From Macrostomum lignano (Eukaryota), in assembly GCA_002269645.1 (NCBI GenBank), contig NIVC01002022.1:117512-181511 (forward strand): 64,000 nt of DNA, given 5' to 3'. This document shows positions 21,966-59,059 of the stretch, one piece after another. Both the position numbers and the translations under genes were made by a program. Numbering within the stretch: the first letter of the stretch is position 1; every line of letters starts with the position of its first letter. The notes under the pieces were generated by a model. That model saw only the letters and a program-made list of their open reading frames with translations, searched no databases and had not been told where the DNA came from.

Positions 21966-22119
21966 GCGTCAACACGCCATCTGTTGATGGTGTGGGCTCT
22001 CCATTGGCAGTGTTGGCTCTCTGGTGATGGATCAATAGTCAATTGCATTTTGCTTTATCTAACTCGTAGAATTCAATGCTTAAGCTTGTATACACACACC
22101 GGGATAGCAATGGATAAAT

Positions 22120-23477: not shown

Positions 23478-23654
23478 TCACTTCTTTGTTGCAAATGGGG
23501 CACAGACATCTTTCACCTTTGAATGCTGCCCCGGCATTGCCTCCTCCTCTTCCCCCTCCTCCTCCTCCTCCTCCTCCTCCTCCTCTTCCTCCTCCTCCTC
23601 CTCCTCCTCTTCCCCTCCTCCTCCTCCTCCTCCTCCTCCTCCTCCTCCTCTTCC

Positions 23655-23686
<32 letters not shown>

Positions 23687-25718
23687 CTCCTCCTCCTCCT
23701 CCGACGGCATCGCCTCCTCCTCCTCCTCCTCCTTCGACGGCATCGCCTGCTCCTCCTCCTCCTCCTCCTTCGACGGCATCGCCTGCTCCTCCTCCTCCTC
23801 CTCCTTCGACGGCATCGCCTGCTCCTCCTCCTCCTTCTCCTCCTCCTCCTCCTCGTGTGAATTGAACCTCCGTCCAGATCGGAGCATGACTCGAGTAACT
23901 GTCTCTCATCTGCGTCATTATATTATGCCGGCCAAAACTTAGCTCATACAGTGCTCTGTATTCCTGCCGCTGAATCAGTGCGAAGTTGTCGATTAGTTCA
24001 GTTTCGGTTGTTACACCCTCGCTGATGGCCGGCCGAAATCGTGGGAAATTGTCTTTTACACCATCATAACTGAGGTTCCAATCGCCACCAATCATGACAA
24101 AATCTGCATCTCCGCAGAGTCGATCAACTGCTCCGTTTAGAATTTTATAACAATCTTTCTTTTCTTCGTTGCTTCTGTGTGGCAGATGTACAGAGAAGTA
24201 GGCCAAGATCATGCCATTGGCTCTCATCCTGAGCTTCGTTAACAGATAGCGGCCCTTGTCGGATGCCGTGAAACACTCATGCTGCAGCTGCCAGACTTTA
24301 GTATTAAAGGCTGTAACGATGGTATCCGGAGAATTACGATTGAGAATGTGGGAGACACATTCCCAATCGGGGCCAAGCAAGTCACAAAATGTTTTCAGGT
24401 ACTCCTGTCCGCTCCATTCAGAAATTGTGATTATGCTGAGCTGAGAGTTCTGCTTGGCTGACAGAAGTTTTTGGCAACACATTCGAACTTCTTCTTCTAG
24501 CTCTGCCGCAGCTTTCTTCGCAGTTGTCACCTGATTAGTTGTCGCCTTATCTGCCTGATCTGCCGCCTCTGCCGCCTTTGCTGCCTGATCTGCCGCCTTT
24601 GCTGCCTGATCTGCCGCCTCTGCCGCCTTTGCTGCCTGATCTGCCGCCTTTGCTGCCTGATCTGCCGCATTTGCCGCCTGATTTGTTTTCATATTTGCTC
24701 TCCATACTTCTTGAATTGCCTTGCACACTGCTACCACCGCTGTCTCATTCCCTGCCACATCTGTCTCATTCCCTGCCACATCTGTCCCAGTCCCTGCCAC
24801 ATCTGTCCCAGTCCCTGCCACATCTGTCCCAGTCCCTGCCACCTCTGTCCCAGTCCCTGCCACCTCTGTCCCAGTCCCTGCCACCTCTGTCCCAGTCCCT
24901 GCCACCTCTGTCCCAGTCCCTGCCACCTCTGTCCCAGTCCCTGCCACCTCTGTCCCAGTCCCTGCCACCTCTGTCCCAGTCCCTGCCACCTCTGTCCCAG
25001 TCCCTGCCACCTCTGTCCCAGTCCCTGCCACCTCTGTCCCAGTCCCTGCCACCTCTGTCCCAGTCCCTGCCACCTCTGTCCCAGTCCCTGCCACCTCTGT
25101 CCCAGTCCCTGCCACCTCTGTCCCAGTCCCTGCCACCTCTGTCCCAGTCCCTGCCACCTCTGTCCCAGTCCCTGCCACCTCTGTCCCAGTCCCTGCCACC
25201 TCTGTCCCAGTCCCTGCCACCTCTGTCCCAGTCCCTGCCACCTCTGTCCCAGTCCCTGCCACCTCTGTCCCAGTCCCTGCCACCTCTGTCCCAGTCCCTG
25301 CCACCTCTGTCCCAGTCCCTGCCACCTCTGTCCCAGTCCCTGCCACCTCTGTCCCAGTCCCTGCCACCTCTGTCCCAGTCCCTGCCACCTCTGTCCCAGT
25401 CCCTGCCACCTCTGTCCCAGTCCCTGCCACGTCTGTCCCAGTCCTTGCCTTTGCTTCCTCGGATCGCCAATACTCTTCTGTCCGTTTCAACGCCTCTGCC
25501 ACATTCTTTAACGCAATTTTCACCTCATTCCAATACCTACTCGCCTCTTCGGGTGCCTCATGTAACAACACGAGCTGCGATGCCGCTGAAAACGCTATTT
25601 TAACCAGTCCACTAGGAAGCAAGTCTCCTTTAAGCTCTGGTTTTCGTTTTGAACCATCCGCGTTGATGGACAGCGCCAAGAAACCAGTGCAGTCAGAGTT
25701 GGCTGGCTCGGTCGCCAT
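23478..25718 (-). CDS. Stand-alone endonuclease/exonuclease/phosphatase (EEP, DNase I-like fold) protein, copy A, 746 aa, with about 33 coding GTGTEVA repeats and a Gly/Glu low-complexity tail
   Basis: EEP-ordered motifs LSINADG, VLLHE, FSVHLP, IGGDWN, IDNF and SSHAPIW. In-frame TGA 6 nt upstream of an ATG in good context. Paralogue at 35279-36385. Confidence 0.7.
23540..23855. repeat. (CCT)n-based microsatellite with 27-30-bp higher-order units at the 3' end of EEP copy A
   Basis: Direct. Confidence 0.95.
24745..25440. repeat. 21-bp coding VNTR (TGTCCCAGTCCCTGCCACCTC), about 33 copies
   Basis: Direct periodicity, frame-preserving. Confidence 0.97.
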
Positions 25719-25894
25719 ACTTCACGGCCTTGCGGGTGATGAAAATACCGGTCACCGTCAGACAGTCCCTGGTCCCAAAGTCACGGATCTCAGTTCCTCC
25801 AGCACTAAGGCCACCTTTTCTGGAAAAATCGTAAAAACGTATCATGAGAAAGAACTCAAACTCGTATCTAACAGTTTTTACTTGCGGTAAAAAA

Positions 25895-26100
25895 ACACAG
25901 AACACTGTCCAATGTGAGGCATGTGCTGTGTACTGGCACACAGAACACTGTCCAATGTGAGGCATGTGCTGTGTACTGGCACACAGAACACTGTCCAATG
26001 TGAGGCATGTGCTGTGTACTGGCACACAGAACACTGTCTAATATGAGGCATGTGCTGTGTACTGGCACACAGAACACTGTCCAATGTGAGGCATGTGCTG
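25895..26100. repeat. 43-bp satellite unit, about 5 copies (short allele of the 36561-50943 array)
   Basis: Same unit and same flanks as the large array. Confidence 0.95.
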
Positions 26101-26139
26101 TTTACTATCTGTGTACTAGACCCCTGTCCCTGATCTTCT

Positions 26140-26370
26140 GGCCACTGATCCCAGTCTCTGATCCCTGACCCCAGTCCCTGACCCCAGTCCCTGACCCCAG
26201 TCCCTGACCCCAGTCCCTGACCCCAGTCCCTGACCCCAGTCCCTGACCCCAGTCCCTGACCCCAGTCCCTGACCCCAGTCCCTGACCCCAGTCCCTGACC
26301 CCAGTCCCTGACCCCAGTCCCTGACCCCAGTCTCTGATCCCAGTCTCTGATCTCCGATCCCAGTCCCTGC
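26140..26370. repeat. 12-bp minisatellite (CCCAGTCCCTGA)
   Basis: Direct periodicity. Only 2-3 units at the equivalent site near 51005. Confidence 0.95.
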
Positions 26371-26844
26371 TCCTAGTACACAGAGCACTGTCCCCAGAAC
26401 ACTTCCATCACCAAAGGCAGTCAAGAGGCTAGTCACTCACATGAGCTGTCAGCAATTGTCGTGGCGAATCGGCACAGCAACTGGGGGAGTCCAGGCAGCT
26501 GTCTCTGCAGCACCCAAGCCGAAAATGCATACTATATACGCAGCATTTCGCCTCACATGAGATTCCTGTCCAATGGGAACAGCTGAATCTGGACTCACGG
26601 CTGCAGCGGCGGAGAGAGGACGGTGGGAGACGGTCAGCCCCACCCCTCCTGATACAAGGCAGCAGCCCAGCACAACAGCTGGGGTGGGGCAGGTCTCCCT
26701 AACAGCTAACTCTCGTAGTGTTTTTTTGCTGTACAAGGAACCGGGACTGCGTCTCCACTTATCTAAACTCTTTGCAGACAATGAAAAATTGTCAAAACAT
26801 GTTTTAGAAGTATAATATTTAATGAGTTATTAGCTATTGAAAAT

Positions 26845-28428
26845 GCTCTGTAGCAGTCTGTATTCTGTGCTCTGTTGCAGTCTGTATTCTGTGGTCTGTA
26901 GCAGTCTGCATTCTGTGCTCTGTTGCAGTCTGTATTCTGTGGTCTGTAGCAGTCTGTATTCTGTATGGTCTGTAGCAGTCTGTATTCTGTGGTCTGTAGT
27001 AGTCTGTATTCTATGGTCTGTACCAGTCTGTATTCTGTGGTCTGTAGCAGTCTGTATTCTGTGGTCTGTAGCAGTCTGTATTCTGTGGTCTGTAGCAGTC
27101 TGTATTCTGTGGTCTGTAGCAGTCTGTATTCTGTGGTCTGTAGCAGTCTGTATTCTGTGGTCTGTACCAGTCTGTATTCTGTGGTCTGTAGCAGTCTGTA
27201 TTCTGTGGTCTGTAGCAGTCTGTATTCTGTATGGTCTGTACCAGTCTGTATTCTGTGGTCTGTAGCAGTCTGTATTCTGTGGTCTGTAGCAGTCTGTATT
27301 CTGTGGTCTGTAGCAGTCTGTATTCTGAATGGTCTGTAGCAGTCTGTATTCTGTAGGGTCTGTAGTAGTCTTTATTCTGTATGGTCTGTACCAGTCTGTA
27401 TTCTGTGGTCTGTAGCAGTCTGTATTCTGTGGTCTGTAGCAGTCTGTATTCTGTATGGTCTGTAGCAGTCTGTATTCTGTATGGTCTGTAGCAGTCTGTA
27501 TTCTGTATGCTCTGTAGTAGTCTGTATTCTGTATGGTCTGTAGTAGTCTGTATTCTGTATGCTCTGTAGTAGTCTGTATTCTGTGGTCTGTAGTAGTCGG
27601 TATTCTATGGTCTGTACCAGTCTGTATTCTGTGGTCTGTAGTAGTCTGTATTCTATGGTCTGTACCAGTCTGTATTCTGTGGTCTGTAGCAGTCTGTATT
27701 CTGTGGTCTGTAGCAGTCTGTATTCTGTATGGTCTGTACCAGTCTGTATTCTGTGGTCTGTAGCAGTCTGTATTCTGTGGTCTGTAGCAGTCTGTATTCT
27801 GTATGGTCTGTACCAGTCTGTATTCTGTGGTCTGTAGTAGTCTGTATTCTGTATGGTCTGTACCAGTCTGTATTCTGTATGGTCTGTAGCAGTCTGTATT
27901 CTGTATGGTCTTTAGTAGTCTGTATTCTGTATGGTCTGTACCAGTCTGTATTCTGTGGTCTGTAGCAGTCTGTATTCTGTATGGTCTTTAGTAGTCTGTA
28001 TTCTGTATGGTCTGTAGCAGTCTGTATTCTGTATGGTCTGTAGCAGTCTGTATTCTGTATGGACTGTAGCAGTCTGTATTCTGTGGTCTGTAGCAATCTG
28101 TATTATGTTGTCTGTAGCAGTCTGTATTATGTGGTCTGGAGCAGTCTGTATTCTGTGGTCTGTAGCAGTCTGTATTATGTTGTCTGTAGCAGTCTGTATT
28201 ATGTGGTCTGTAGCAGTCTGTATTCTGTATGGACTGTAGCAGTCTGTATTCTGTATGCTCTGTAGTAGTCTGTATTCTGTATGGTCTGTAGCAGTCTGTA
28301 TTCTGTATGGACTGTAGCAGTCTGTATTCTGTATGCTCTGTAGTAGTCTGTATTCTGTATGGTCTGTAGCAGTCTGTATTCTGTATGGACTGTAGCAGTC
28401 TGTATTCTGTATGGTCTGTAGCACTCTG
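26845..28428. repeat. 24/26-bp minisatellite (GTCTGTATTCTGT[AT]GGTCTGTAGCA)
   Basis: Direct periodicity. Same family at 51535-51640 and 57450-58697. Confidence 0.95.
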
Positions 28429-28639
28429 TAATCTCTATATATATGAGTTCAACACCCTTCTCATCACCGTTGCAATCCATTACAAAAAATACAAATAAAT
28501 TAATCGATGTGCCATTAATGAACCTTTTGAGGTCTCAAATCGTGTTTTCAGCTTCTAAAAGTAGCAAATTGAATTGTCCCTTGAACAAGATCTTGCAGAT
28601 ATAGATTTCTGTGAATCAGATGCCATTTACCCCCAAACA

Positions 28640-30110
28640 TTGGAGAGACGAGACAAGACAAGGGGAGATGAGACAGCGAGAGATGAGACACGGTAGAGAT
28701 GCGACAGGAGAGAGATGAGACAGTGAGAGATTAGAGATGAGATGATGAGACACGGGAGAGAGATGAGACTCGGAGAGACGGTAGAGATGAGACTCGGGTG
28801 AGACGGGAGAGACGGGAGAGATGATACACGGGAGAGACGAAACACTGGAGAGATGAGACACCGGAGAGATGAGACACTGGAGAGATGAGACACGGGAGAG
28901 ATGAGACACGGGAGAGATGAGACACGGGAGAGATGAGACACCGGAGAGATGAGACACGGGAGAGATGAGACACGGGAGAGATGAGACACTAGAGAGATGA
29001 TACCCTGGAGAAATAAGACACTGAAGAGATGAGACACTGGAGACATGAGACACCGAAGAGATGAGATACGGAAGAGATGAGACACTGGAGAGATGAGACA
29101 CGGGAGAGATGAGACACTGGAGAGATGAGACACTGGAGAGATGAGACACCGAAGAGATGAGACACTGGAGAGATGAGACACGGAAGAGATGAGACTCTGG
29201 AGAGATGAGACACTGGAGAGATGAGACACGGGAGAGATGAGACACGGGAGAGATGAGACTCTGGAGAGATGAGACACGGGGGGATGAGACACTGGAGAGA
29301 TGAGACACTGGAGAGATGAGACACTGGAGAGATGAGACACGGGAGAGATGAGACACGGGAGAGATGAGACTCTGGAGAGATGAGACACGGGGGATGAGAC
29401 ACTGGAGAGATGAGACACTGGAGAGATGAGACACTGGAGAGATGAGACACGGGAGAGATGAGACACGGGAGAGATGAGACTCTGGAGAGATGAGACACGG
29501 GGGATGAGACACTGGAGAGATGAGACACTGGAGAGATGAGACACCGAAGAGATGAGACACGGAAGAGATGAGACACGGAAGAGATGAGACTCTGGAGAGA
29601 TGAGACACGGGGGGATGAGACACCGGAGAGATGAGACTCTGGAGAGATGAGACACCGGAGAGATGAGACACTGGAGAGATGAGACACCGAAGAGATGAGA
29701 CACGGGAGAGATGAGACACGGGAGAGATGAGACACGGGAGAGATGAGACACGGGAGAGATGAGACACGGGAGAGATGAGACTCTGGAGAGATGAGACACG
29801 GGGGGATGAGACACTGGAGAGATGAGACACCGAAGAGATGAGACACGGGAGAGATGAGACTCTGGAGAGATGAGACACGGGAGAAATGAGACACGGGAGA
29901 GATGAGACACGGGAGAGATGAGACACGGGAGAGATGAGACACGGGAGAGATGAGACACGGGGGGATGAGACACTGGAGAGATGAGACACTGGAGAGATGA
30001 GACACTGGAGAGATGAGACACTGGAGAGATGAGACACGGGGGATGAGACACTGGAGAGATGAGACACTGGAGAGATGAGACACTGGAGAGATGAGACAGG
30101 GTAGAGACGG
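28640..30110. repeat. 15-bp minisatellite (GGAGAGATGAGACAC)
   Basis: Direct periodicity. Confidence 0.95.
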
Positions 30111-34395: not shown

Positions 34396-35278
34396 GCTCC
34401 GTCATCTGACTAAATCTAAAATACTGGTGCACACTTGAACACCAACCGAATGGCTTTAATTTAAGTTAAACATTAAAAACATACCTGAAATGTAATTTCC
34501 TGTAAATGTAGCGCAAATTAGTACATGCAATCGCTGACGCAATCGCTGACGGAATAAAATCCATTTGGGATAAGCATTTCGGGTTCTTCATCGAACTCTA
34601 AATAAATAATTGTGTGTTTGAGGAGAGAAATAATCAACGACGTGCATAAATCGTTAACCAAAATGAGTAACAAGTGCTAAACACGCGGATCTATTAATGT
34701 GTGTAAGAGTGCGATCATGAGACAAGCGCATCTTCTAATGAGTAAGAGGAAAGGATTAACGTCGAGTTTTTCGAGCGCTCGAGAGTAAAAATTTTGTGCA
34801 CCATCTTGTAAAGCTGCGCTCTGGTGAATAATGCATGAGAGGAAAGCGATAGAGCAATCAAAGTTTACCTAAAGCGGAACAAGGGAAAAACAAAAAGCTA
34901 CAAGCAAAACGATTAAAAAACCGAATAAACCAACGCAATCTTCATTTGACGAGAGGTACAGATACAGATACAGACCCGTGCAGTTCTTATCTAGAGTGCG
35001 AATCAAGTATTAATTACGTATAAAAGTATCAGTTTGAGAACTACTTAAGTAAAATATGAAATATGCTCTGAAATAAGTTAATAGTCTTTTTTATTCGATT
35101 CGGTTCGAAAAACGGTTCGAAATTAAAACTAAATTAAAGTACACACAGTTCTGCGAATTGTCTGTGAAAATTTACCATTAGCAGCTTTTGCAGACTGCCA
35201 GTCGCGGACAGGTCTCTATGGAGGACAGCTCTGACGCACACTCGTTCGTGTACCAGCCGCATGATAGCTCCGCTGCTG

Positions 35279-36385
35279 CTAAGTGTTTATATTCAAATCT
35301 CTCATCAGATTTCCAATGTCAGGCCGCAGTGCCGGAAGTTGAACCTCGGCCCAGATAGGAGCATGCTGCTTTGTGTAATTGCCTAGCAGCTCTCTCATTA
35401 TTTTCTTTGTATCAAAGCTTGGCGTAGTCTGTAGTCTCGAGCGTGGTGGCAAGATCAGTGCGAAGTTGTCGATTGGATGTTTTACACTCGGAGCGCTTGT
35501 ACTGCCATCTTCATTGCTAAAGGCTAGAAAAATGTTTGGATGAATCTCATGTCGAAGGTCTTCAGGCCCAATTTTCCAATCGCCACCGATCATGATCAAG
35601 TCTGGAGGTTGGGTTTCGCGGCAAAGCTGATCAAGCTTTTCTTTTAAATTTCTATAAGATGCTTGCTTTTTCTCTTCATTTTTGCTTGGCAGATGTACAG
35701 AGAAGTAGGCCAAGATCATGCCATTGGCTCTCATCTTGAGCTTCGTTAACAGATAGCGGCCCTTGTCGGATGCCGTGAAACACTCATGCTGCAGCTGCCA
35801 GACTTCAGTATTAAAGGCTGTAACGATGGTATCCGGTGGATAACGATTTAGAATGTGGGAGACACATTCCCAATCGGGGCCTAGCAAGTCACAAAATGGT
35901 TTCAGGTTACCCTGTCCGCTCCATTCAGAAACTGTGATTATGCTGAGCTGAGACTTCTGCTTGGCTGACAGAAGTTTTTGGTAACACATTCGAACTTCTT
36001 TTTTTAGCTCTGCCGCAGCTTCCTTCGCAGTTGTCACCTGACCTGCCGGCTGACCTGCCGCCTCTGCCGCCTGACCTGCCGCCTGACCTGCCGCCTGACC
36101 TGCCGCCTGACTTGTCTCATTCCCTGCCTGTTCTGGCTCGAACCACCAATAATTTTTTGTCCGTGTCCACGCATTTACCACATTTCTTAATGCAATTCCC
36201 ACCTTCTTCCAATACCCACTCGCCTCATGTAACAACACGTGCTGCGTTGCCGCTGAAAACGCTATTTCAATCAGTCCACTAGGAAGCAAGTCTCCTTTAA
36301 GATTTCCTATTCGACTTGAACCATCCGCGTTGATGGACAGCGCCAAGAAACCAGTGCAGTCAGAGTTGGCTGGCTCGGTCGCCAT
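35279..36385 (-). CDS. Stand-alone EEP-fold protein, copy B, 368 aa
   Basis: Same start ([22 protein letters not shown]) and same core as copy A. Motifs VLLHE, FSVHLP, IGGDWK, IDNF and KQHAPIW. Uninterrupted ORF. Confidence 0.7.
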   Translation of the reverse strand: MATEPANSDCTGFLALSINADGSSRIGNLKGDLLPSGLIEIAFSAATQHVLLHEASGYWKKVGIALRNVVNAWTRTKNYWWFEPEQAGNETSQAAGQAAGQAAGQAAEAAGQPAGQVTTAKEAAAELKKEVRMCYQKLLSAKQKSQLSIITVSEWSGQGNLKPFCDLLGPDWECVSHILNRYPPDTIVTAFNTEVWQLQHECFTASDKGRYLLTKLKMRANGMILAYFSVHLPSKNEEKKQASYRNLKEKLDQLCRETQPPDLIMIGGDWKIGPEDLRHEIHPNIFLAFSNEDGSTSAPSVKHPIDNFALILPPRSRLQTTPSFDTKKIMRELLGNYTKQHAPIWAEVQLPALRPDIGNLMRDLNINT

Positions 36386-36560
36386 GCTTCACGGCCTTGC
36401 GGGTGATGAAAATACCGGTCACCGTCAGACACTCCCTGGTCCCAAAGTCACGGATCTCAGTTCCTCCAGCACTAAGGCCACCTTTTCTGGAAAAATCGTA
36501 AAAACGTATCATGAGAAAGAACTCAAACTCGTATCTAACAGTTTTTACTTGCGGTAAAAA

Positions 36561-45500: not shown

Positions 45501-48500
45501 AACACTGTCCAATATGAGGCATGTGCTGTGTACTGGCACACAGAACACTGTCCAATATGAGGCATGTGCTGTGTACTGGCACACAGAACACTGTCCAATA
45601 TGAGGCATGTGCTGTGTACTGGCACACAGAACACTGTCCAATATGAGGCATGTGCTGTGTACTGGCACACAGAACACTGTCCAATATGAGGCATGTGCTG
45701 TGTACTGGCACACAGAACACTGTCCAATATGAGGCATGTGCTGTGTACTGGCACACAGAACACTGTCCAATATGAGGCATGTGCTGTGTACTGGCACACA
45801 GAACACTGTCCAATATGAGGCATGTGCTGTGTACTGGCACACAGAACACTGTCCAATATGAGGCATGTGCTGTGTACTGGCACACAGAACACTGTCCAAT
45901 ATGAGGCATGTGCTGTGTACTGGCACACAGAACACTGTCCAATATGAGGCATGTGCTGTGTACTGGCACACAGAACACTGTCCAATATGAGGCATGTGCT
46001 GTGTACTGGCACACAGAACACTGTCCAATATGAGGCATGTGCTGTGTACTGGCACACAGAACACTGTCCAATATGAGGCATGTGCTGTGTACTGGCACAC
46101 AGAACACTGTCCAATATGAGGCATGTGCTGTGTACTGGCACACAGAACACTGTCCAATATGAGGCATGTGCTGTGTACTGGCACACAGAACACTGTCCAA
46201 TATGAGGCATGTGCTGTGTACTGGCACACAGAACACTGTCCAATATGAGGCATGTGCTGTGTACTGGCACACAGAACACTGTCCAATATGAGGCATGTGC
46301 TGTGTACTGGCACACAGAACACTGTCCAATATGAGGCATGTGCTGTGTACTGGCACACAGAACACTGTCCAATATGAGGCATGTGCTGTGTACTGGCACA
46401 CAGAACACTGTCCAATATGAGGCATGTGCTGTGTACTGGCACACAGAACACTGTCCAATATGAGGCATGTGCTGTGTACTGGCACACAGAACACTGTCCA
46501 ATATGAGGCATGTGCTGTGTACTGGCACACAGAACACTGTCCAATATGAGGCATGTGCTGTGTACTGGCACACAGAACACTGTCCAATATGAGGCATGTG
46601 CTGTGTACTGGCACACAGAACACTGTCCAATATGAGGCATGTGCTGTGTACTGGCACACAGAACACTGTCCAATATGAGGCATGTGCTGTGTACTGGCAC
46701 ACAGAACACTGTCCAATATGAGGCATGTGCTGTGTACTGGCACACAGAACACTGTCCAATATGAGGCATGTGCTGTGTACTGGCACACAGAACACTGTCC
46801 AATATGAGGCATGTGCTGTGTACTGGCACACAGAACACTGTCCAATATGAGGCATGTGCTGTGTACTGGCACACAGAACACTGTCCAATATGAGGCATGT
46901 GCTGTGTACTGGCACACAGAACACTGTCCAATATGAGGCATGTGCTGTGTACTGGCACACAGAACACTGTCCAATATGAGGCATGTGCTGTGTACTGGCA
47001 CACAGAACACTGTCCAATATGAGGCATGTGCTGTGTACTGGCACACAGAACACTGTCCAATATGAGGCATGTGCTGTGTACTGGCACACAGAACACTGTC
47101 CAATATGAGGCATGTGCTGTGTACTGGCACACAGAACACTGTCCAATATGAGGCATGTGCTGTGTACTGGCACACAGAACACTGTCCAATATGAGGCATG
47201 TGCTGTGTACTGGCACACAGAACACTGTCCAATATGAGGCATGTGCTGTGTACTGGCACACAGAACACTGTCCAATATGAGGCATGTGCTGTGTACTGGC
47301 ACACAGAACACTGTCCAATATGAGGCATGTGCTGTGTACTGGCACACAGAACACTGTCCAATATGAGGCATGTGCTGTGTACTGGCACACAGAACACTGT
47401 CCAATATGAGGCATGTGCTGTGTACTGGCACACAGAACACTGTCCAATATGAGGCATGTGCTGTGTACTGGCACACAGAACACTGTCCAATATGAGGCAT
47501 GTGCTGTGTACTGGCACACAGAACACTGTCCAATATGAGGCATGTGCTGTGTACTGGCACACAGAACACTGTCCAATATGAGGCATGTGCTGTGTACTGG
47601 CACACAGAACACTGTCCAATATGAGGCATGTGCTGTGTACTGGCACACAGAACACTGTCCAATATGAGGCATGTGCTGTGTACTGGCACACAGAACACTG
47701 TCCAATATGAGGCATGTGCTGTGTACTGGCACACAGAACACTGTCCAATATGAGGCATGTGCTGTGTACTGGCACACAGAACACTGTCCAATATGAGGCA
47801 TGTGCTGTGTACTGGCACACAGAACACTGTCCAATATGAGGCATGTGCTGTGTACTGGCACACAGAACACTGTCCAATATGAGGCATGTGCTGTGTACTG
47901 GCACACAGAACACTGTCCAATATGAGGCATGTGCTGTGTACTGGCACACAGAACACTGTCCAATATGAGGCATGTGCTGTGTACTGGCACACAGAACACT
48001 GTCCAATATGAGGCATGTGCTGTGTACTGGCACACAGAACACTGTCCAATATGAGGCATGTGCTGTGTACTGGCACACAGAACACTGTCCAATATGAGGC
48101 ATGTGCTGTGTACTGGCACACAGAACACTGTCCAATATGAGGCATGTGCTGTGTACTGGCACACAGAACACTGTCCAATATGAGGCATGTGCTGTGTACT
48201 GGCACACAGAACACTGTCCAATATGAGGCATGTGCTGTGTACTGGCACACAGAACACTGTCCAATATGAGGCATGTGCTGTGTACTGGCACACAGAACAC
48301 TGTCCAATATGAGGCATGTGCTGTGTACTGGCACACAGAACACTGTCCAATATGAGGCATGTGCTGTGTACTGGCACACAGAACACTGTCCAATATGAGG
48401 CATGTGCTGTGTACTGGCACACAGAACACTGTCCAATATGAGGCATGTGCTGTGTACTGGCACACAGAACACTGTCCAATATGAGGCATGTGCTGTGTAC

Positions 48501-50943
48501 TGGCACACAGAACACTGTCCAATATGAGGCATGTGCTGTGTACTGGCACACAGAACACTGTCCAATATGAGGCATGTGCTGTGTACTGGCACACAGAACA
48601 CTGTCCAATATGAGGCATGTGCTGTGTACTGGCACACAGAACACTGTCCAATATGAGGCATGTGCTGTGTACTGGCACACAGAACACTGTCCAGTATGAG
48701 GCATGTGCTGTGTACTGGCACACAGAACACTGTCCAATATGAGGCATGTGCTGTGTACTGGCACACAGAACACTGTCCAATATGAGGCATGTGCTGTGTA
48801 CTGGCACACAGAACACTGTCCAATATGAGGCATGTGCTGTGTACTGGCACACAGAACACTGTCCAATATGAGGCATGTGCTGTGTACTGGCACACAGAAC
48901 ACTGTCCAATATGAGGCATGTGCTGTGTACTGGCACACAGAACACTGTCCAATATGAGGCATGTGCTGTGTACTGGCACACAGAACACTGTCCAATATGA
49001 GGCATGTGCTGTGTACTGGCACACAGAACACTGTCCAATATGAGGCATGTGCTGTGTACTGGCACACAGAACACTGTCCAATATGAGGCATGTGCTGTGT
49101 ACTGGCACACAGAACACTGTCCAATATGAGGCATGTGCTGTGTACTGGCACACAGAACACTGTCCAGTGAGGCATGTGCTGTGTACTGGCACACAGAACA
49201 CTGTCCAATATGAGGCATGTGCTGTGTACTGGCACACAGAACACTGTCCAATATGAGGCATGTGCTGTGTACTGGCACACAGAACACTGTCCAGTGCGAG
49301 GCATGTGCTGTGTACTGGCACACAGAACACTGTCCAATATGAGGCATGTGCTGTGTACTGGCACACAGAACACTGTCCAATATGAGGCATGTGCTGTGTA
49401 CTGGCACACAGAACACTGTCCAGTATGAGGCATGTGCTGTGTACTGGCACACAGAACACTGTCCAATATGAGGCATGTGCTGTGTACTGGCACACAGAAC
49501 ACTGTCCAATATGAGGCATGTGCTGTGTACTGGCACACAGAACACTGTCCAATATGAGGCATGTGCTGTGTACTGGCACACAGAACACTGTCCAATATGA
49601 GGCATGTGCTGTGTACTGGCACACAGAACACTGTCCAATATGAGGCATGTGCTGTGTACTGGCACACAGAACACTGTCCAATATGAGGCATGTGCTGTGT
49701 ACTGGCACACAGAACACTGTCCAGTGCGAGGCATGTGCTGTGTACTGGCACACAGAACACTGTCCAATATGAGGCATGTGCTGTGTACTGGCACACAGAA
49801 CACTGTCCAATATGAGGCATGTGCTGTGTACTGGCACACAGAACACTGTCCAATATGAGGCATGTGCTGTGTACTGGCACACAGAACACTGTCCAATATG
49901 AGGCATGTGCTGTGTACTGGCACACAGAACACTGTCCAATATGAGGCATGTGCTGTGTACTGGCACACAGAACACTGTCCAATATGAGGCATGTGCTGTG
50001 TACTGGCACACAGAACACTGTCCAATATGAGGCATGTGCTGTGTACTGGCACACAGAACACTGTCCAATATGAGGCATGTGCTGTGTACTGGCACACAGA
50101 ACACTGTCCAGTATGAGGCATGTGCTGTGTACTGGCACACAGAACACTGTCCAATATGAGGCATGTGCTGTGTACTGGCACACAGAACACTGTCCAATAT
50201 GAGGCATGTGCTGTGTACTGGCACACAGAACACTGTCCAATATGAGGCATGTGCTGTGTACTGGCACACAGAACACTGTCCAATATGAGGCATGTGCTGT
50301 GTACTGGCACACAGAACACTGTCCAATATGAGGCATGTGCTGTGTACTGGCACACAGAACACTGTCCAATATGAGGCATGTGCTGTGTACTGGCACACAG
50401 AACACTGTCCAATATGAGGCATGTGCTGTGTACTGGCACACAGAACACTGTCCAATATGAGGCATGTGCTGTGTACTGGCACACAGAACACTGTCCAATA
50501 TGAGGCATGTGCTGTGTACTGGCACACAGAACACTGTCCAATATGAGGCATGTGCTGTGTACTGGCACACAGAACACTGTCCAATATGAGGCATGTGCTG
50601 TGTACTGGCACACAGAACACTGTCCAATATGAGGCATGTGCTGTGTACTGGCACACAGAACACTGTCCAGTGCGAGGCATGTGCTGTGTACTGGCACACA
50701 GAACACTGTCCAATATGAGGCATGTGCTGTGTACTGGCACACAGAACACTGTCCAATATGAGGCATGTGCTGTGTACTGGCACACAGAACACTGTCCAAT
50801 GAGGCATGTGCTGTGTACTGGCACACAGAACACTGTCCAATATGAGGCATGTGCTGTGTACTGGCACACAGAACACTGTCCAATATGAGGCATGTGCTGT
50901 GTACTGGCACACAGAACACTGTCCAATATGAGACATGTGCTGT
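36561..50943. repeat. 14.4-kb satellite of a 43-bp unit (ACACTGTCCAATATGAGGCATGTGCTGTGTACTGGCACACAGA), about 335 copies
   Basis: Direct periodicity. Variants of 40-43 bp differ almost only in the AATAT linker. Confidence 0.99.
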
Positions 50944-52168
50944 TTACTATCTGTGTACTAGACCCCTGTCCCTGATCTTCTGGCACTGATCCCAGTCTCT
51001 GATCCCTGACCCCAGTCCCTGACCCCAGTCTCTGATCCCAGTCTCTGATCTCCGATCCCAGTCCCTGCTCCTAGCACACAGAGCACTGTCCCCAGACACT
51101 TCCATCACCAAAGGCAGTCAGGAGGCCAGTCACTCACATGAGCTGTCAGCAATTGTCGTGGCGAATCGGCGCAGCAACTTGGGGAGTCCAGGCAGTCTCT
51201 TCAGCACTCAAGCCAAAAAATGCATACTATATATGCAGCATTTCGCCTCACATGAGATTCCTGTCCAATGGGAACAGCTGAATCTGGTCTCACGGCTGCA
51301 GCAGCGGAGAGAGGACGGTGGGAGACGGTCAGCCGCACCCCTCCTGATACAAGGCAGCAGCCCTGCACAACAGCTGGGGTGGGGCAGGTCTCCCTAACAG
51401 CTAATTCTCGTAGTGTTTTTGCTGTACAGTGAACCGGGGCTGCGTCGCCACTTATCTGAACTCTTTGCAGTCAATGAAAAATTGTCACGACATGTTTTTA
51501 AAGTACAATATTTAATAAGTTATTAGCTATTGAAAATGCTCTGTAGCAGTCTGTATTCTGTTGTCTGTAGTAGTCTGTATTCTATGGTCTGTACCAGTCT
51601 GTATTCTGTATGGTCTGTACCAGTCTGTATTCTGCGGTCTTGACTTACTTGACTTAGCTGCAGGGGGCGTCCGGCGGATGCAGCGAGGAGGCGGAGGAGA
51701 CCGCCCATTCCGCTAGCCCCTGGCGACCAACGACTTCCGTTGAAGTGGTGTCGCTCAGGGGACCCGTCGGTCTCGCCTGCAGCGCGGTCCTCCTCACCGA
51801 CGGTGGGGAAGAAATCAGCTCGTCCGGTGTCCCTGAGGTACCGGGCGAGCAGCGGGATGCTCTCGGGCCTACAAACGTCGGAGAGAACCGGGTTTGGCCC
51901 GAGGTGAGTAAGCCTGGCCCTGGTGAAAACCGGGCAGTGGCAGATAAAATGCTCGGCGTTTTCACTGCCTGAGCGGCAGAAGGGGCACCGCTCCTCGGGT
52001 ACTTGGCCCTGAAGGAAGCGGTGGCGAGAGAAGCAGCCATGCCCGGAGAGGGCCATGCTAACTGCTCTGAGGTCTCTGCGGTTGAGCCTGAGGAGGGCTC
52101 TACGCAGGAGAGGAGAGGGACAGGGGACGGCAGCACGGGATTGCCTACAATTCCGGGTGTCGTGCCAC

Positions 52169-55100
52169 CTACCTGCGGAGATGCTCGGAGTCAGCCCAGC
52201 GCTTAACGCGGGAGTTGATCACCGAGGCGGGGATGGGGGCACCCGGGCCCGGCCCCAGCAGCGCGCCGGCGGAGCCAGCCTTGGCCAGCAGGTCAGCGCG
52301 CTCGTTGCCGAGGAAGCCGGCGTGGCCCGGGATCCATCTGAGCTCCACCTGGTTGCCTAGCGCAAGCCCGTTGAGCTGGGTGTTGCAGTCCAGGACGGAC
52401 CTGGAGCTGGCGGTGCTGCGGCAGAGGGCCCGAAGGGCTGCTTGGCTGTCAGAGTGAAAAATAAATTTCCGGCCGCTAAGCTGCCTTCGGCGCAGCTCTG
52501 CCGCGCAGGAGCTGATGGCAAGCACCTCGCTCTGAAAAACACTGGAGTTGAGCCCAGTGTGCTGGGAGTAGCTCCACACCACTTCTCCCTTGAAGAAGAC
52601 GCAGGCTCCGAAGCCTGAAAGACCATGCCTCATAGAGCCGTCAGTGTAACAGTGGACTTCAGAGTCGCTCCAGCTGTCACTCGCCTCGTGTCGAGGCTGA
52701 ATGGTGACCTTATACCTTTGGCTCAGGAGAAGGGTGGCTGGGATCGAGTCCGTGAGGATGTTGAGCCCGCCACACTCCTCGAGAGCCTTGAGGCAGAGGT
52801 CAGAGTGCGGGATAAGCGACCGCTTCTTAAAGGCCCGCACTTTCTTGAAGGCCACCCCAGCATCCAGAAGACGCCGGGTGCTCTTCGCCGCCTCTCCTTT
52901 GATATAAATATCCAAAGGAGGGGCACAGAGGAAGGCATTCATGCCTTCAAAAGGAGTAGAGGGTGGAGCGCCCATAGTCATGCGGCAGGCTCTGCCCTGG
53001 ATTTTGTAGAGAGCGTCGAGGTTGCTCTTGACGCTCAGGCCGCTAGCCCACACGAGGCTGGCGTAACTGATCGAGGGGCGGATGATGGCAGTGTAAATCC
53101 ACCACAGCTTCCTGGGGGTGAGCCCCCAGGTGGTGCCCACGGCGCGCCTGATCTGAGCCAGTACAGCCAGGGCTTTTTTGGCTTTAGTTTGAATGTGCGG
53201 AGTCCAGTTAAGCCTGTGGTCCAGAGTGAGGCCCAGGCAGCGGACCTGCTTCTCCATGGAAATATTCTTTCCATAGAGGGTGAGGGGCTTAATGGTCCAG
53301 AGCAGTTTGTTGGTAAACATGACTGCTGTGGTTTTCGACTCTGAGAGTCTAAGGCCACATTGGTCTGCCCAACGCTCCGCTCGTCCCAGAAAGCCCTGCA
53401 GAAGGTCTCTGATGGTATCAACCGAGGGGCCCGCGCATATCGCGGTCACATCATCGGCATAGCCCACCTTGAGAATGGGGTCGTGGAGATCACTGCAAAG
53501 CAACTCATCCATGACCATGTTCCAGAGAACGGGGGTGAGAACGCCGCCCTGGGGGCCCCCTTTCAGGACAGGCACCGAAAGAGAGCTGCCGCTCAGGTGG
53601 GCCACAACAGTGCGGTTTCGGATCATGAACATGATCCACCGGACAAGGTGAGGGTGCGTGGCCCTGGATTCCAGGGCTCTGCAAAAGGCCTCGAAGATGA
53701 CGTTGTCGAAGGCCCCCTCAATGTCCAGGAAAAGCGAGAGGGCAAAGCCGCTGCCAAGAACGGCCCTCTCCAGGAAGTCAACAATGACATGGAGAGCACT
53801 CTCGGTTGACCTGCCCGCGCGGAAGGCGTGCTGGTTCTGCGAGAGTGGGAAGCGCTTCAGCTCGACCGAAAGTAGGCGCCAAAGCACCAGTCTCTCGAGG
53901 AGCTTGAGGCAGAAAGAAGTGAGGCTGATAGGCCTGAAGGCCTTCACCGATTGGTAGTCGCTCTTTCCAGGCTTGGGGATAAAGACCACCCGGGCCTCTC
54001 TCCATGCAACTGGTACATAGCCCAGCTCCATACAAGCTCGAAGGAGACGACAGAGCAGGTCCAGGAAGCGGTGGTTTTTCACCGCCTCGTGCAAGAACGC
54101 TGGGTAGATGCCGTCGGGCCCAGGCGCCTTGAACGGGTTAAAGGACCTTGCCGCTCTAATAATGCGGTCTTTGGTGATCATAGACTTAGCTAGGCCTTGC
54201 CCTCCCACTGTGTGGTCGGGCGGGCCCTGCTGAGTCGGAGATTTAGGGAAAAAACTGTTGAGCATGAGCTCTAGAGTCTCTTCCGAACTCTCTGTGACCG
54301 AGCCGTCAGGTCTCTTCACAACAGAGAGTTTAGAAAAACGGTCATTAGTGAGTGCCTTAACCACGCGGGCTACGGGGCGAGAGCCCTCAAGCCCTTCGCA
54401 ATATTGGCGCCACTTGGCCGTCTTGGCCCTTCTGACTTGGCCCTTAAACTCGTGGATCGCACGGGTATAGGCCTCTCTGTCAGATGGGTCTTTGGTTTTG
54501 AGCGCTCGCCTTTGGAGGGTCCTGGCTCGGCGCCGAAGGGCCCCGAGCTCTGGGTTCCACCAGGGAGCAGATTTCTTGCCTTTATAGGCCTTTAGGGGGC
54601 AGGCTGCTTCAAAGGCAGTGGTGATCGCCCCGCCCAGGGAGGAGGCGAGATCGTCCACTACCTGGCAGTCAGAGAGGTCACTGGGGGGGTCAAGATCCCG
54701 AAGGCCGCGGCTCAGCTTCGAGCCAAAGGCGGCCCAATCGGTGTTCCTGACGTTCCGACTCCAAGTGACCTTAGGCTTTTGCTTGGTCAGCCCAATGCAA
54801 AAGCGGATAAAGCGGTGGTCCGAGAGCGAGTCATCGTCCCACACTCGCCAGCCCGTAACTGCGGAAAGCAGTCCGGGTGAGGCGATGGTGGTGTCGATGA
54901 CTTCGGCCCACCGCCCATTATTGAACGTTGGTGCATTGCCCACGTTACAGAAGTTGAGGTTAGTGCTGCTGACATAGGCCAGCAGCTCCTCGCCTCTGCT
55001 ATTGATGTTCTTGCTGCCCCAATGCAGGTGGTGTGCGTTCACATCCCCTGCAATGAGCAGCTCGAACCGATGGGACGCAGCATAGTCAGTAAGGTTGACT

Positions 55101-55462
55101 AACGCGTCGCAGACAACTGGGGCATCGCCTGGGAAATAGGCAGATGCTACCAGCACAGGTTTATTGGGAATGAGGTTATTGATTTGAACAACACAGATGT
55201 CCCCAGTCGAGAGATCAGGTCTCATCCATGCCTCAAAAGCTTTTGCAGCAAAGACCAGAGATCTTGGGCGAGGCTGAGAGCCTGCCATGCAAAAACAGTG
55301 GTAGCCAGATGGCACATTATTTGGCTTACCTTTAGTCATCCAGGGCTCCTGTACGAAGACCAGGCCCGGAAGCTGTTGCTCTGCCGTGCGCATCAGGTTG
55401 ACCGACGCCGCCACGCAGTGCTGGGTGTTGATCTGCAGACACCAGGTAGTCGCTGGCATCAT
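52169..55462 (-). CDS. LINE ORF2 (endonuclease, reverse transcriptase, RNase H), 1097 aa. The C-terminal zinc knuckle (about 51800-52100) is separated by frameshifts.
   Basis: Motifs as above. The ORF stops at a 4-bp AGGT duplication near 52170. Confidence 0.9.
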
Positions 55463-57000
55463 TGCAGATCGGATGTTGCAGCCGCCAGGAGTTCCTCCTC
55501 CTCCTCGGCGCTCACCGGCTTCGGGTCGGGGTCGCCGGTGTCCATGGGCTCTTCTTCAGCAAAAGGCCCCCGATTGGCCGGAAGGCAGTAGGCAGCGTTC
55601 GCCGCCCTTTGCCCACCATCCATGGGGTCCTCCGCCTCAGATTGGCCCAATGCCCTGGAGCAGCCAGCCGCCTGGGCAGGCGGGTCCGTCTCCAGTCGGC
55701 CCTGCCCCGAGGGGTTGGGCCCAGCTGGGACGTCCCCACCCTCCCTGGACGAACTGGTGCGCCTAGGCGTCCCGGCGACCTCTCGCCTCAGCTGGGATTT
55801 TGGCGGTACGGACTGCCTCAGCTGCACGCTGGTACAGGCCGCGCCGCTTGGTGCTGCGCGCCGGGCGTCGGTCGCCTCCGCCCTCAGCAGCGCGCTCAGC
55901 TTTGCCCGCGCGGCCGTGCTGCCGGGCAGGGCGGTTTGCTTTGGCAGTCTGAGCAGAGGCTTGCGCCTCGGCCCCGGCCGCCTCCGCATCCCGCCCGCCC
56001 TGCTCACTGCCACGGGGAGGGTCGGCCTCGTAGGAGCGGATGCGCAGCTTCCAAAGGCCGACGTTGATGAAGCTGCCGTGTGATAACGCCTCATCCAGGC
56101 GTCCGACAGCCCCAGGATGGCTGTGAAGCCAGTGCCGTCGGTGCGCTTAAGGGTGTCATGCACCACTAGGCCCGCGGCGGGAAGCTCCCGGTTGACTGCT
56201 AGCAGTCCTTTCCGGAGCTCGTCAGCAGAGGTAACAACGCTCCTGGCCGGGACCCAGATTCGATGCCTCTTGGTCCGGGGGCGCTCGTCCTCTCTGCAGA
56301 AGGCTAGGTTGAGGTCCCAGCTCTGCTCGGGCAGCAGCTCAAGGAGCCGCCGACCCGAGTCAGCATCACTGGGCCAAATGAGAAGGCACGAGTCCCTCGT
56401 CGCATTCGAATGAATGTTCAGAGGCGTGCCCTTCAGAGTTTGCTTCCACAGGAGGCCATCAACGGCACTTCTCACCTGCTTCAGCTGATCGGGAGACAGG
56501 CGCGCGTCCTTTCCCAGGATGACAACCGCCGGTTGCCTCTTTGCCGCATCAGCGTAGGAGGCCCGGGGTCAGTGGAGCTTTCTTCAGGTGGGCTGTCCAC
56601 CCTCCCGGCTGCATCGGCCTCCCTATCCTGGGCAGGGGCTTCCGTGGGCTCGAGGCCCTCTTCCGCCACCGCCCCAGACTGGGAAGCTTCCGCTGCCGCG
56701 GGCCGTTGGCCCCTGGCACCGGTTTGGCTTCCGCCCTCCTTGGCCCGCCTCGCCTTGTTAAGTCGACGGCGGGCAGCTCCAGAGGTGGTGCTGCGTTTCT
56801 TAGCAGCTGGAGTAGCAGGTGTCTTCTCGGAGGCACCGCTCAGAGTTGGCTCCACGGGTCTCGCCGAGGCGTCCCCGATGGTAGCAGGTGGTATGGCCGA
56901 GGAGTCCACGGCCCCAGCCGAGGCCGGAGGCACTGTGTCATCCACAGCCGGTTTGTTACTTCGGTTAGAAGCCATTGGCTGGAAGTAAAAAGGTGGGACT
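55459..57000 (-). pseudogene. LINE ORF1 (gag-like), frameshifted at about 56520 and about 56080
   Basis: Position upstream of ORF2. Alternative frames restore AVVILGKDARLSPDQLKQVRSAVDG and GSFINVGLWKLRIR. Confidence 0.7.
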
Positions 57001-59059
57001 TCCTGCAGAACACAGGCAAAGAGCCGCAAGGCCGCAACCCCAAACCAAGCGGCAGGCCCCAAAAAGCAAAATACCACCCGCGGGGGGACCCAAAAGCGCA
57101 AGGGGAACCGTTAGCGACCAGACTACTCCCTGGCCAAGCGTCCATCAGCACGGAGTTACACTGGGACATTAGAGGGTGCGTTTATGGTCACACCAGGACC
57201 CGGCGCCAACGAATCAGCTCGGCAGGGCCCAAGGGGGCCTGTCTTAACACCCACGGGACAAGTACCCTTCGAAGTGCGCCTTGCAAGGTGAAAATCAGGA
57301 GACAGAGTCTCTTGAGCTATCAGCCCGCCAGGGGAGGCAGGTGTGAGCATCGCTGGCTGGGATAAAGGCCATACCAGTCTCATACTGCACAGATAGTTCA
57401 CCACGCCATTACGTGCAGGACCCGGGGTCCTGGGGGCAACAGCCCCGGCGTATTCTGCGGTCTGTAGTAGTCTGTATTCTGTGTGGTCTGTACCAGTCTG
57501 TATTCTGCGGTCTGTACCAGTCTGTATTCTGTGGTTTGTAGCAGTCTGCAGTCTGTGGTCTGTAGCAGTCTGCATTCTGTGGTCTGTAGCAGTCTGTATT
57601 CTGTGGTTTGTAGCAGTCTGCAGTCTGTGGTTTGTAGCAGTCTGCAGTCTGTGGTCTGTAGCAGTCTGCATTCTGTGGTCTGTAGCAGTCTGTATTCTGT
57701 GGTCTGTAGCAGTCTGCATTCTGTGGTCTGTAGTAGTCTCCATTCTGTGGTCTGTAGCAGTCTGTATTCTGTGGTCTGTAGCAGTCTGTATTCTGTGGTC
57801 TGTAGTAGTCTGCATTCTGTGGTCTGTAGCAGTCTGCATTCTGTGGTCTGTAGCAGTCTGTATTCTGAATGGTCTGTACCAGTCTGTATTCTGTGGTCTG
57901 TAGCAGTCTGCATTCTGTGGTCTGTAGCAGTCTGCATTCTGTGGTCTGTAGCAGTCTGCATTCTGAATGGTCTGTACCAGTCTGTATTCTGTGGTCTGTA
58001 GTAGTCTGCATTCTGTGGTCTGTAGTAGTCTGTATTCTGTGGTCTGTAGCAGTCTGCATTCTGTGGTCTGTACCAGTCTGTATTCTGTGGTCTGTAGCAG
58101 TCTGCATTCTGTGGTCTGTAGCAGTCTGCATTCTGTGGTCTGTAGCAGTCTGTATTCTGCATGGTCTGCACCAGTCTGTATTCTGTGGTCTGTAGTAGTC
58201 TGTAGTCTGTGGTCTGTATTAGTCTGTATTCTGTACGGTCTGCACCAGTCTGTATTCTGTACGGTCTGCACCAGTCTGTATTCTGCATGGTCTGCACCAG
58301 TCTGTATTCTGTACGGTCTGCACCAGTCTGTATTCTGTAAAGTCTGCACCAGTCTGTATTCTGTACGGTCTGCACCAGTCTGTATTCTGTACGGTCTGCA
58401 CCAGTCTGTATTCTGTATGGTCTGCACCAGTCTGTATTCTGTATGGTCTGCACCAGTCTGTATTCTGTACGGTCTGCACCAGTCTGTATTCTGCATGGTC
58501 TGCACCAGTCTGTATTCTGTACGGTCTGCACCAGTCTGTATTCTGTAAAGTCTGCACCAGTCTGTATTCTGTATGGTCTGCACCAGTCTGTATTCTGTAC
58601 GGTCTGCACCAGTCTGTATTCTGTATGGTCTGCACCAGTCTGTATTCTGTATGGTCTGCACCAGTCTGTATTCTGTATGGTCTGCACCAGTCTGTATTAG
58701 TAGTAATAGAAAATTTCGGTCATACCCCATTGTCAATTGCAAAATACGTAATAAGGTACCCGTCAGAAATTTTATTACGCACATACCTTATTTTTCTATT
58801 AAAAATTAAATAGTAAGGTACCGAACCAAATGGTAGGGTATTCTACATGCAGGAATTCCAACTACACTGCACCGTACCCACAAAGAATTCAAAAGAAGAA
58901 AGATCTCAAGTTGGATCAACCAACCAACTTGTCCAAAACGCATTTTCGGCATATTTCTGCATTACAAGAATAGAGGTAACACTTGTGTTGCAAAGCGTCG
59001 TAGGCAAAAATACGCGCGCCGAAACTCATTTCCTCGTCAAGGCCCACTACCAAGGAGAC

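Follow-up and report, generated by a model that had tools for sequence, protein, structure and literature searches.

Two tandem paralogues of a divergent EEP-fold family in Macrostomum lignano and the minisatellites beside them

A stretch of 64,000 nucleotides from the flatworm Macrostomum lignano (NCBI GenBank assembly GCA_002269645.1, contig NIVC01002022.1, positions 117,512 to 181,511 of the forward strand; hereafter the window, numbered from its first letter) carries two copies, A and B, of a minus-strand gene predicted to belong to the EEP superfamily, each accompanied by the same series of tandem-repeat arrays. The two genes are likely to be old tandem paralogues of a divergent intracellular EEP-fold family, the 5' part of which was recently homogenised, with the arrays as bystanders and not as substrates or partners of the encoded proteins. 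The initial annotation, made from the sequence alone, had taken gene and arrays for a physically coupled cassette.

Comparison of the window with itself by BLASTN, with array boundaries and copy numbers taken from Tandem Repeats Finder (TRF), yielded two colinear direct repeats, copy A at 24180-28438 and copy B at 35687-58698, made up of blocks that are 91-99% identical, far above chance level. A 24180-24598 corresponds to B 35687-36108 (91%), A 25555-25900 to B 36222-36566 (96%), A 26100-26170 to B 50942-51011 (99%), and A 26340-26850 to B 51038-51543 (93.6%). Both units are in direct orientation with the EEP gene on the minus strand, and their parts follow a common order, which reads from distal to proximal on the gene strand: 24/26-bp array, leader, 13-bp array, 43-bp array, proximal 5' sequence, open reading frame (ORF). 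The two copies, their orientation, position and order of parts were confirmed as the initial annotation had given them, as were its 24/26-bp and 43-bp arrays; its 12-bp array has a period of 13 bp, the duplication at DNA level stops inside the ORF, and several coding arrays as well as a retrotransposon in copy B had been overlooked. Scanning the window by tblastn returned these two EEP gene copies and no others.

The copy A ORF (23478-25718, minus) encodes 746 residues, with repeat-encoded insertions between motifs I and II and at the C-terminus. Two in-frame arrays, one of 21/51 bp (24543-24682) encoding (AADQAAK)n and one of 34 units of 21 bp (24734-25449, 98% identical) encoding (GTGTEVA)34, fall within a predicted helical insertion between beta1/alpha1 and beta2, and a CCT microsatellite (23540-23854) encodes a Gly/Glu-rich C-terminal tail that is absent from copy B. 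The copy B ORF (35279-36385, minus) encodes 368 residues and contains a 12-bp array of 6.5 units (36037-36111) encoding (QAAG)n. Upstream of the copy A ORF follow 176 bp of proximal 5' sequence (25719-25894), 98% identical to the 175 bp at the same place in copy B (36386-36560), then a 43-bp array of 4.9 copies (25895-26106), a 13-bp array of 14.5 copies that reads (GGGACTGGGGTCA)n on the gene strand (26162-26369), a unique leader of ~470 bp (26370-26842) and a 24/26-bp array of ~64 copies (26843-28438). The corresponding parts of copy B are a 43-bp array of 335.9 copies extending over 14.4 kb with 98% matches (36561-50948), a 13-bp array of ~5 copies (50986-51067), a unique leader that is 93.6% identical to that of copy A (51068-51535), and a 24-bp array that is split by the retrotransposon into a gene-proximal remnant (51536-51638) and a distal part of ~50 copies (57450-58698).

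In a codon comparison of the two copies, residues 1-233 differ by a synonymous divergence (dS) of ~0.08, in agreement with the 6% divergence of the non-coding leader, and residues 234-352 by a dS of ~1.0 with a ratio of nonsynonymous to synonymous rates (omega) of 0.45. The point at which dS switches coincides with the end of DNA colinearity within the ORF (A 24180 / B 35687), beyond which the 3' thirds align as protein only. With P0001, a homologue introduced below, as outgroup, a relative-rate test counted 17 ancestral residues lost from the 3' third of copy B and 8 from that of copy A, a difference that is not significant (p=0.11).

In the history that we propose, an old tandem duplication would have produced two full-length paralogues. 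A recent gene conversion or unequal crossover would then have overwritten the 5' two-thirds of one gene together with ~4 kb upstream, arrays included, the homogenised upstream stretch already carrying three ordinary minisatellites. Thereafter the arrays would have grown or shrunk independently through slippage or unequal exchange, the copy-number gap that has arisen since homogenisation being 70-fold for the 43-bp array (5 vs 336) and ~3-fold for the 13-bp array, and an unrelated retrotransposon would later have inserted into the 24-bp array of copy B. Since a single segment was duplicated or converted, the arrays co-occur in copies A and B by common descent and not by independent association, and gene conversion of tandem paralogues combined with independent array expansion suffices to explain the cassette pattern.

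The family to which the two genes belong is sparsely populated. Neither window ORF matched any family in a Pfam scan, PF03372 included, a phmmer search of the PDB with copy B returned spurious protein A matches only, and exact-product look-ups found neither EEP ORF on record. In a word-indexed search of 5.8 billion proteins, copy B as query returned nothing and the family profile returned P0003 and P0004 only. An exhaustive HMMER pass over 1.84 billion representative proteins gave three true homologues, none of them annotated: P0001 (43% identity, E 2.6e-20), which is encoded on contig NIVC01001626.1 of the same M. lignano assembly (locus L003), and P0003 and P0004 (E ~1e-7). A fourth match in that pass, P0002, was rejected as a spurious repeat-protein match. 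PF03372 itself matches P0003 with an E value of 2.4e-4 and 21.4 bits, below the gathering threshold of 24.5 bits, and P0004 with 0.016. The family is an undescribed, very narrowly distributed and divergent branch within the EEP superfamily, which bears out the initial annotation's proposal of an undescribed family.

Some features of the distant homologues are recorded here for completeness. A Cys-rich motif near the N-terminus, M-x-C-x-C-C-G-A ... C-S-C ... S-H-x-C-L, is common to P0003 and P0004 and absent from the M. lignano members. P0004 (L002, 1-3000) closes a series of three intronless ORFs (zf-TRAF-like, THUMP and EEP) that are arranged head to tail and spaced 44-61 bp apart, an arrangement with a polycistronic look, and the P0003 contig (L001) has Nextera adapter sequence at its bounds.

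P0001, P0003 and P0004 share a segment A-x-N-x-D-x-x-N-R, followed ~30 residues on by T-V-[ST]-E-[WL], and from this spacing 'LSINADG' and 'IITVSEW' of the window proteins were identified as EEP motifs I and II. The helical, repeat-encoded insertion between the two motifs comprises 90 residues in copy B and ~370 in copy A. Invariant positions are, in copy B numbering, N19, D21, R25, T151, E154, S229-V-H-L-P233, G268-D269, D306-N307, H341 and P343; N19 and D21 of motif I and E154 of motif II are unchanged in 5/5 family sequences, and E154 aligns in hhalign with the QE glutamate of endonucleases from long interspersed nuclear elements (LINEs). SVHLP and GD are likewise invariant across the family; copy A, P0001, P0003 and P0004 keep the Asn of GDxN, which is Lys in copy B (GGDWK). 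Of the motif series that had been read from the sequence earlier, the N, E, H, D and HxP are thus invariant, the GDxN Asn is missing from copy B, and the Asp that canonically precedes the terminal His is missing from all members; in the window proteins the series is not picked up by Pfam. Copy A, in which N19/D21, TISEW, SVHLP, GGDWN, IDNF and SHAPI are all kept, retains the full predicted catalytic set of the family, whereas copy B may be impaired by its Lys.

Assignment to the superfamily draws on profile and structure comparison. The best match of the family profile in the PDB is nSMase2 (8j2f, E 0.033) over the His...GDxN segment, with ExoIII and CdtB also listed. Alignment of the family profile with a profile of 71 LINE endonuclease (EN) domains, with hhalign in local mode, extended over 189 columns (P=2.1e-4, 15% identity, 45% probability) and brought the E, H/Y, GDxN, D and H motifs all into register. 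An AlphaFold2 model of P0001, computed from a 7-row alignment in which both window proteins were represented by their N- and C-terminal cores, reached a pLDDT of 73.6 and a pTM of 0.78. Foldseek with this model gave 174 PDB matches at E<=1e-3, and the best 50 of 174 are all EEP enzymes; among the matches listed are TDP2 (8.5e-11), nocturnin, DNase I, CNOT6L, ANGEL2 and synaptojanin, with TM scores of 0.5-0.7. By profile comparison, motif register and the predicted structure, the window ORFs and their homologues are members of the EEP superfamily, as had been claimed, and no EEP subfamily is clearly preferred. The earlier suggestion of a structure search on the 368-residue copy was answered by the P0001 model, which matches the EEP fold, but not by the copy itself: the AlphaFold2 model of copy B from a 2-sequence alignment was unusable at a pLDDT of 40, although its order of strands and helices agrees.

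The proteins may be enzymatically active, and their nearest structural neighbours hint, if faintly, at a nucleic-acid phosphodiester as substrate. By inspection, with no predictor used, the window proteins have no signal peptide; their N-terminus runs directly into beta1 and the longest hydrophobic run is 7 residues.

A candidate gene model was assembled from short motifs in the leaders and proximal regions, for which roles in promoter, donor and acceptor are only putative. ATTGG (B 51269-51265, A 26574-26570) is followed 32 nt downstream by TATATAG (B 51233-51227, A 26538-26532) and farther on by a candidate splice donor CAT/GTGAGT (B 51137-51132, A 26440-26435; the slash marks the putative junction), and both proximal regions hold a candidate acceptor TTTTTCCAG (ending at B 36487 / A 25820) in the conserved context TTTTTACGATTTTTCCAG/AAAAGG, which lies 101 nt 5' of the ATG. 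The surroundings of the copy B ATG (A at -3, G at +4) conform well to the Kozak consensus. Plausible poly(A) signals follow both EEP stops; for copy B the model puts polyadenylation ~180 nt beyond the stop, with AATAAA near 35097. At P0001, an acceptor immediately precedes the ATG and a GTTAGT donor lies 123 nt upstream. The transcripts would thus begin with a short non-coding exon 1, followed by an intron in the 5' untranslated region (UTR) that would measure 621 nt in copy A, joining ~26441 to 25819, and 14,651 nt in copy B, joining ~51138 to 36486. The promoter would have the 24-bp array upstream of it. As seems most likely from the motifs, the 13- and 43-bp arrays would lie within this 5'UTR intron, or else within an outron cleared by spliced-leader (SL) trans-splicing, which is common in the species (PMC8629364). 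With the arrays in an intron or outron, their length would be largely neutral for the protein.

The repeats of this region have some further properties. On the sense strand the 13-bp array is G-quadruplex-prone and sits directly downstream of the candidate splice donor. A 9-mer, ATTGGACAG, is common to the CCAAT region of the leader (51269-51261) and every 43-bp unit, with a chance expectation of ~0.1, and includes a CCAAT box on the opposite strand. The 43-bp unit of copy B is free of stops in all three minus-strand frames, giving rise to three overlapping ORFs of ~4800 residues each (36360-50986, minus), none in frame with the EEP ORF; as a stop-free unit of this length is expected by chance in ~13% of cases, these ORFs are probably artefactual.

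Several observations weigh against the reading as old paralogues with bystander arrays. The fold was predicted on the paralogue P0001 and not on a window protein, the direct model of copy B having a pLDDT of 40. In all family members the Asp of the SDH motif, before the terminal His, is missing and replaced by Ser, Thr or Gln, so that activity is not assured. Neither ORF, nor any protein more than 50% identical to one, occurs among ~15 billion predicted proteins, Logan assemblies of public sequencing runs included. The gene model is built solely from consensus motifs. In the recently homogenised part omega is ~1.1-1.4, and residues 1-55 have accumulated 11 nonsynonymous and 0 synonymous substitutions, a pattern that shows no sign of present purifying selection; with so few substitutions in the young segment relaxed and positive selection are inseparable. 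Finally, the longest arrays, 14.4 kb in copy B and 5.6 kb at P0001, have a period of 43-45 bp and both lie upstream on the gene strand, whereas the other arrays sampled reach a maximum of ~1.6 kb. With three loci only, chance and a real association of long 43-45-bp arrays with the family cannot be told apart.

Some of these points would also fit a locus in decay, in which at least one copy would be a non-functional relic with an ORF still open by chance, and the arrays would be invading sequence on which selection no longer acts. Such a locus would account for an omega of ~1 or above in the homogenised 5' two-thirds, for the Lys in place of the catalytic Asn and the private indels of copy B, for the 34-unit in-frame minisatellite and poly-Gly/Glu tail of copy A, for the lack of an identical or close protein in the public prediction sets searched, and for the putative copy B intron, swollen to 14.6 kb, with a LINE acquired nearby. 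We nevertheless consider decay unlikely, since both ORFs, of 368 and 746 codons, are intact, omega is 0.45 at a dS of ~1 in the old 3' third, the family motifs are kept across four divergent homologues, and conservation reaches 98% around the start codon and over the proximal 175 bp; the substitutions in the young part are too few to tell an omega of 1 from moderate constraint.

The retrotransposon within copy B (51639-57449, minus) is a nearly intact non-LTR element of 5.8 kb that splits the 24-bp array. Its ORF2 (52169-55462, with one frameshift near 52170) encodes EN, reverse transcriptase (RT) and RNase H domains, and its ORF1 region (55459-57101) is split in two ORFs (55459-56475 and 56481-57101). 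Both junctions bear a 12-bp target-site duplication, ACCGCAGAATAC, of which the 3' copy (51638-51627) is held by the gene-proximal remnant of the array and the 5' copy (57461-57450) by the distal part, and the element ends in a 3' tail (TAAGTCAAG)2. ORF2, for which an exact-product look-up found no record, is 100% identical to UniProt A0A1I8IXZ7 of M. lignano over the aligned 37% of the query; several other top UniProt matches are also M. lignano proteins, and the element shares 62% identity with P0005, an element derived from Logan. Its own EN domain, the target-site duplication and the tail repeat identify the LINE as an independent insertion that is not part of the EEP gene. The EEP gene had been described as having neither RT nor signal peptide; this holds for the gene, but the span of copy B does contain an RT ORF, namely LINE ORF2, which is the sole RT there and lies 15 kb upstream of the EEP ORF.

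The family could also have arisen from the APE-type endonuclease of a LINE after loss of the RT, a domestication that had been raised as one possible origin. The hhalign match to LINE EN domains (P=2e-4, motifs in register), a weak Exo_endo_phos_2 ('Endonuclease-reverse transcriptase') match to P0003 in Pfam (E 0.005) and the abundance of LINEs in the M. lignano genome are compatible with this origin. The similarity (15% identity, 45% probability) is, however, no more than would be expected of an arbitrary pair of EEP families, the His in SVHLP stands where APE and LINE endonucleases have Tyr or Phe, the best PDB profile match is a sphingomyelinase, and the nearest structures are TDP2, nocturnin and DNase I, with no LINE EN in the best 50 of 174. 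No RT remnant was found beside either copy or P0001. Nothing specific ties the family to LINE endonucleases, and we regard domestication as very unlikely.

The setting of the arrays is a genome with pronounced simple-repeat expansion (PMC10733133). Tandem repeats of at least 100 bp make up 46% of the window; their share is 34% in positions 1-23000, which hold 15 arrays (~1 per 1.5 kb), and 49% in the spacer between copies A and B. The window also holds a second tandem duplication of a gene plus array, 12600-14256 vs 16041-16683 (plus), in which an unrelated transmembrane-protein gene was duplicated together with a 15-bp array (GCCCCTGGTGCTAAA). Its unique transmembrane exon is 96.6% identical over 381 bp, the ORFs read through the arrays, and a 16-bp array (13347-13841) is present in the first copy only.

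At the P0001 locus, an array of 123 units of 45 bp lies 1.5 kb upstream of the gene and one of 80 units of 21 bp farther out. BLASTN similarity between this locus and the window is confined to the coding sequence, and the arrays do not match. In cyclic alignment the 43-bp and 45-bp units are not significantly similar (p=0.12), and the value of p=0.013 for the 24-bp and 21-bp units, which was obtained in the wrong relative orientation and is uncorrected for 6 tests, was not counted as significant. The 21-bp array encodes the (TTTTTTP)n of a mucin-like gene (L003 1-2017, minus) that is oriented divergently from P0001 and has a signal peptide and a Cys-rich domain ahead of the repeat. Genomic copies lacking the arrays, which the initial annotation had named as evidence against its reading, were found in part: the contigs of P0003 (1.4 kb) and P0004 (3 kb) are free of arrays, but both are short and offer little flank, and P0001 has arrays that are unrelated. 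The arrays beside the EEP genes are best explained as minisatellites of an ordinary kind, in a genome saturated with repeats, that were carried along when the gene was duplicated; the repeat background, the control duplication within the window, the unrelated arrays of P0001 and the array-free contigs of P0003 and P0004 all speak against the functional coupling that had been proposed.

Such coupling would take the form of a selfish or otherwise functional unit of nuclease and satellite, in which the adjacent arrays would be acted on or maintained by the enzyme, or would regulate it (driver/responder, toxin-like or nick-induced expansion), and we give it little credence. It could draw on the very long upstream arrays of 43-45-bp period at copy B and P0001 (14.4 and 5.6 kb), which exceed all other arrays sampled, and on the 9-mer ATTGGACAG in both the CCAAT region of the leader and the 43-bp unit. 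Against it, copy A has 5 units of the 43-bp repeat only, the array sequences of the paralogous loci are unrelated (p=0.12, no BLASTN match), P0003 and P0004 are without arrays, the co-occurrence in A and B follows from descent of one segment, minisatellites are ubiquitous in the window, where another gene shows the same pattern, and three loci provide no statistical power. Nothing specific ties the family to a driver/responder or toxin-like system. A more specific version, in which a flatworm-specific nuclease acts in cis or trans on long 43-45-bp minisatellites upstream of its own genes as a co-evolving and possibly selfish gene-array unit, appears equally remote; were it true, nicking by the enzyme could, for example, drive array expansion, or the arrays could have a responder or regulatory role.

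Internal minisatellites and APE-like endonuclease modules occur in some DNA transposons, and the EEP gene could be the internal module of an array-carrying element, Helentron-like or other, but the probability is close to nil: Pfam scans of neighbouring ORFs detected LTR and LINE domains only, no Rep, helicase or transposase lies near copy A, copy B or P0001, the edge of the duplication lies inside the ORF and not at element termini, the flanks have no terminal repeats in common, and the P0001 locus shares the coding sequence only. The Helentron-like EN module of the initial annotation found no Rep-helicase to accompany it, and with neither termini nor dispersed copies the transposon candidate was rejected as largely refuted.

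In the remainder of the window, a long terminal repeat (LTR) retrotransposon extends over ~16879-21085 (minus), with LTRs that are 97.5% identical (16879-17000 / 20964-21085) and protease, RT, RNase H and integrase ORFs in several broken pieces. An RT-fragment ORF (2759-3454, PF00078) within 2495-4240 (plus) is flanked by a 41-bp and a 45-bp array built from a common unit, and the array continues into the 3' end of the ORF. Related purine-rich 16-bp arrays at 21279-21963 and 28656-30107 (AGAGATGAGACAGGAG / AGACACGGGAGAGATG) lie on either side of copy A and have no counterpart beyond copy B. Just downstream of copy A are a 100-bp palindrome (22116-22217) and a pair of 36-bp inverted repeats ~400 bp apart (22497-22532 / 22932-22968), which resembles a miniature inverted-repeat transposable element. 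An ORF of 152 residues at 59206-59664 (minus) contains FFVANTDTSNLPGRHWVAVWV and has no Pfam match; the motif is reminiscent of adenain/Ulp-type cysteine peptidase modules of Maverick/Polinton-like elements. Rfam and tRNA scans of the window returned nothing.

With this family a very divergent and very rare branch is added to the EEP superfamily, distinguished by an active-site variant without the Asp before the terminal His and by a loop able to accommodate hundreds of inserted residues encoded by minisatellites. If active on nucleic acids, its members would be candidates for a lineage-specific factor in DNA- or RNA-end processing in a model organism for regeneration. The locus is also a clean example of how the repeat-saturated genome of M. 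lignano yields cassette-like patterns, and advises caution in scans that read gene-satellite linkage as functional.

Enzymes of the EEP superfamily are phosphodiesterases that depend on Mg2+ and have the DNase I / TDP2 / CCR4-nocturnin type of structure. The present family resembles the superfamily (PF03372 clan) in its predicted four-layer alpha/beta sandwich (Foldseek E~1e-10, TM 0.5-0.7) and in the order of its motifs, with N-x-D-G after beta1, the E ending beta2, the His in 'VHLP', G-D-x-N, 'ID-NF' and the terminal His-x-Pro. It differs in being 10-15% identical to any solved EEP structure, the window proteins being without a Pfam match, in having Ser, Thr or Gln in every member for the Asp before the terminal His (canonical SDH), and in the predicted helical, repeat-encoded insertion between beta1/alpha1 and beta2, which in the window copies measures from 90 to >370 residues. 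The catalytic domain of nSMase2 (SMPD3) likewise has a large insertion, and nSMase2 (8j2f) is the best PDB profile match (E 0.033), with the 'xxHL ... GDxN' segment aligned; the match, however, comprises ~55 residues, the family lacks hydrophobic segments that would anchor it in a membrane, and SMPD3 does not rank first among its structural neighbours. APE-type endonucleases of LINEs, such as that of the element at 51639-57449, share the superfamily and an HMM-HMM alignment of 189 columns with motifs in register, but the family lacks an RT, has His and not Tyr or Phe in the third motif, is 15% identical, and does not have these endonucleases among its top structural neighbours. From the secreted DNase I, CdtB and bacterial sphingomyelinase type the window proteins differ, by inspection, in having no signal peptide. 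The locus as a whole compares most directly with gene-converted tandem paralogues with intronic or upstream minisatellites, a generic eukaryotic arrangement, which it resembles in the sharp boundary between a dS of 0.08 and one of ~1.0, in array copy numbers that differ between the copies, and in the second example within the window. It departs from this arrangement in nothing essential; an array of 14.4 kb and a 70-fold difference between copies in the number of 43-bp units lie at the large end.

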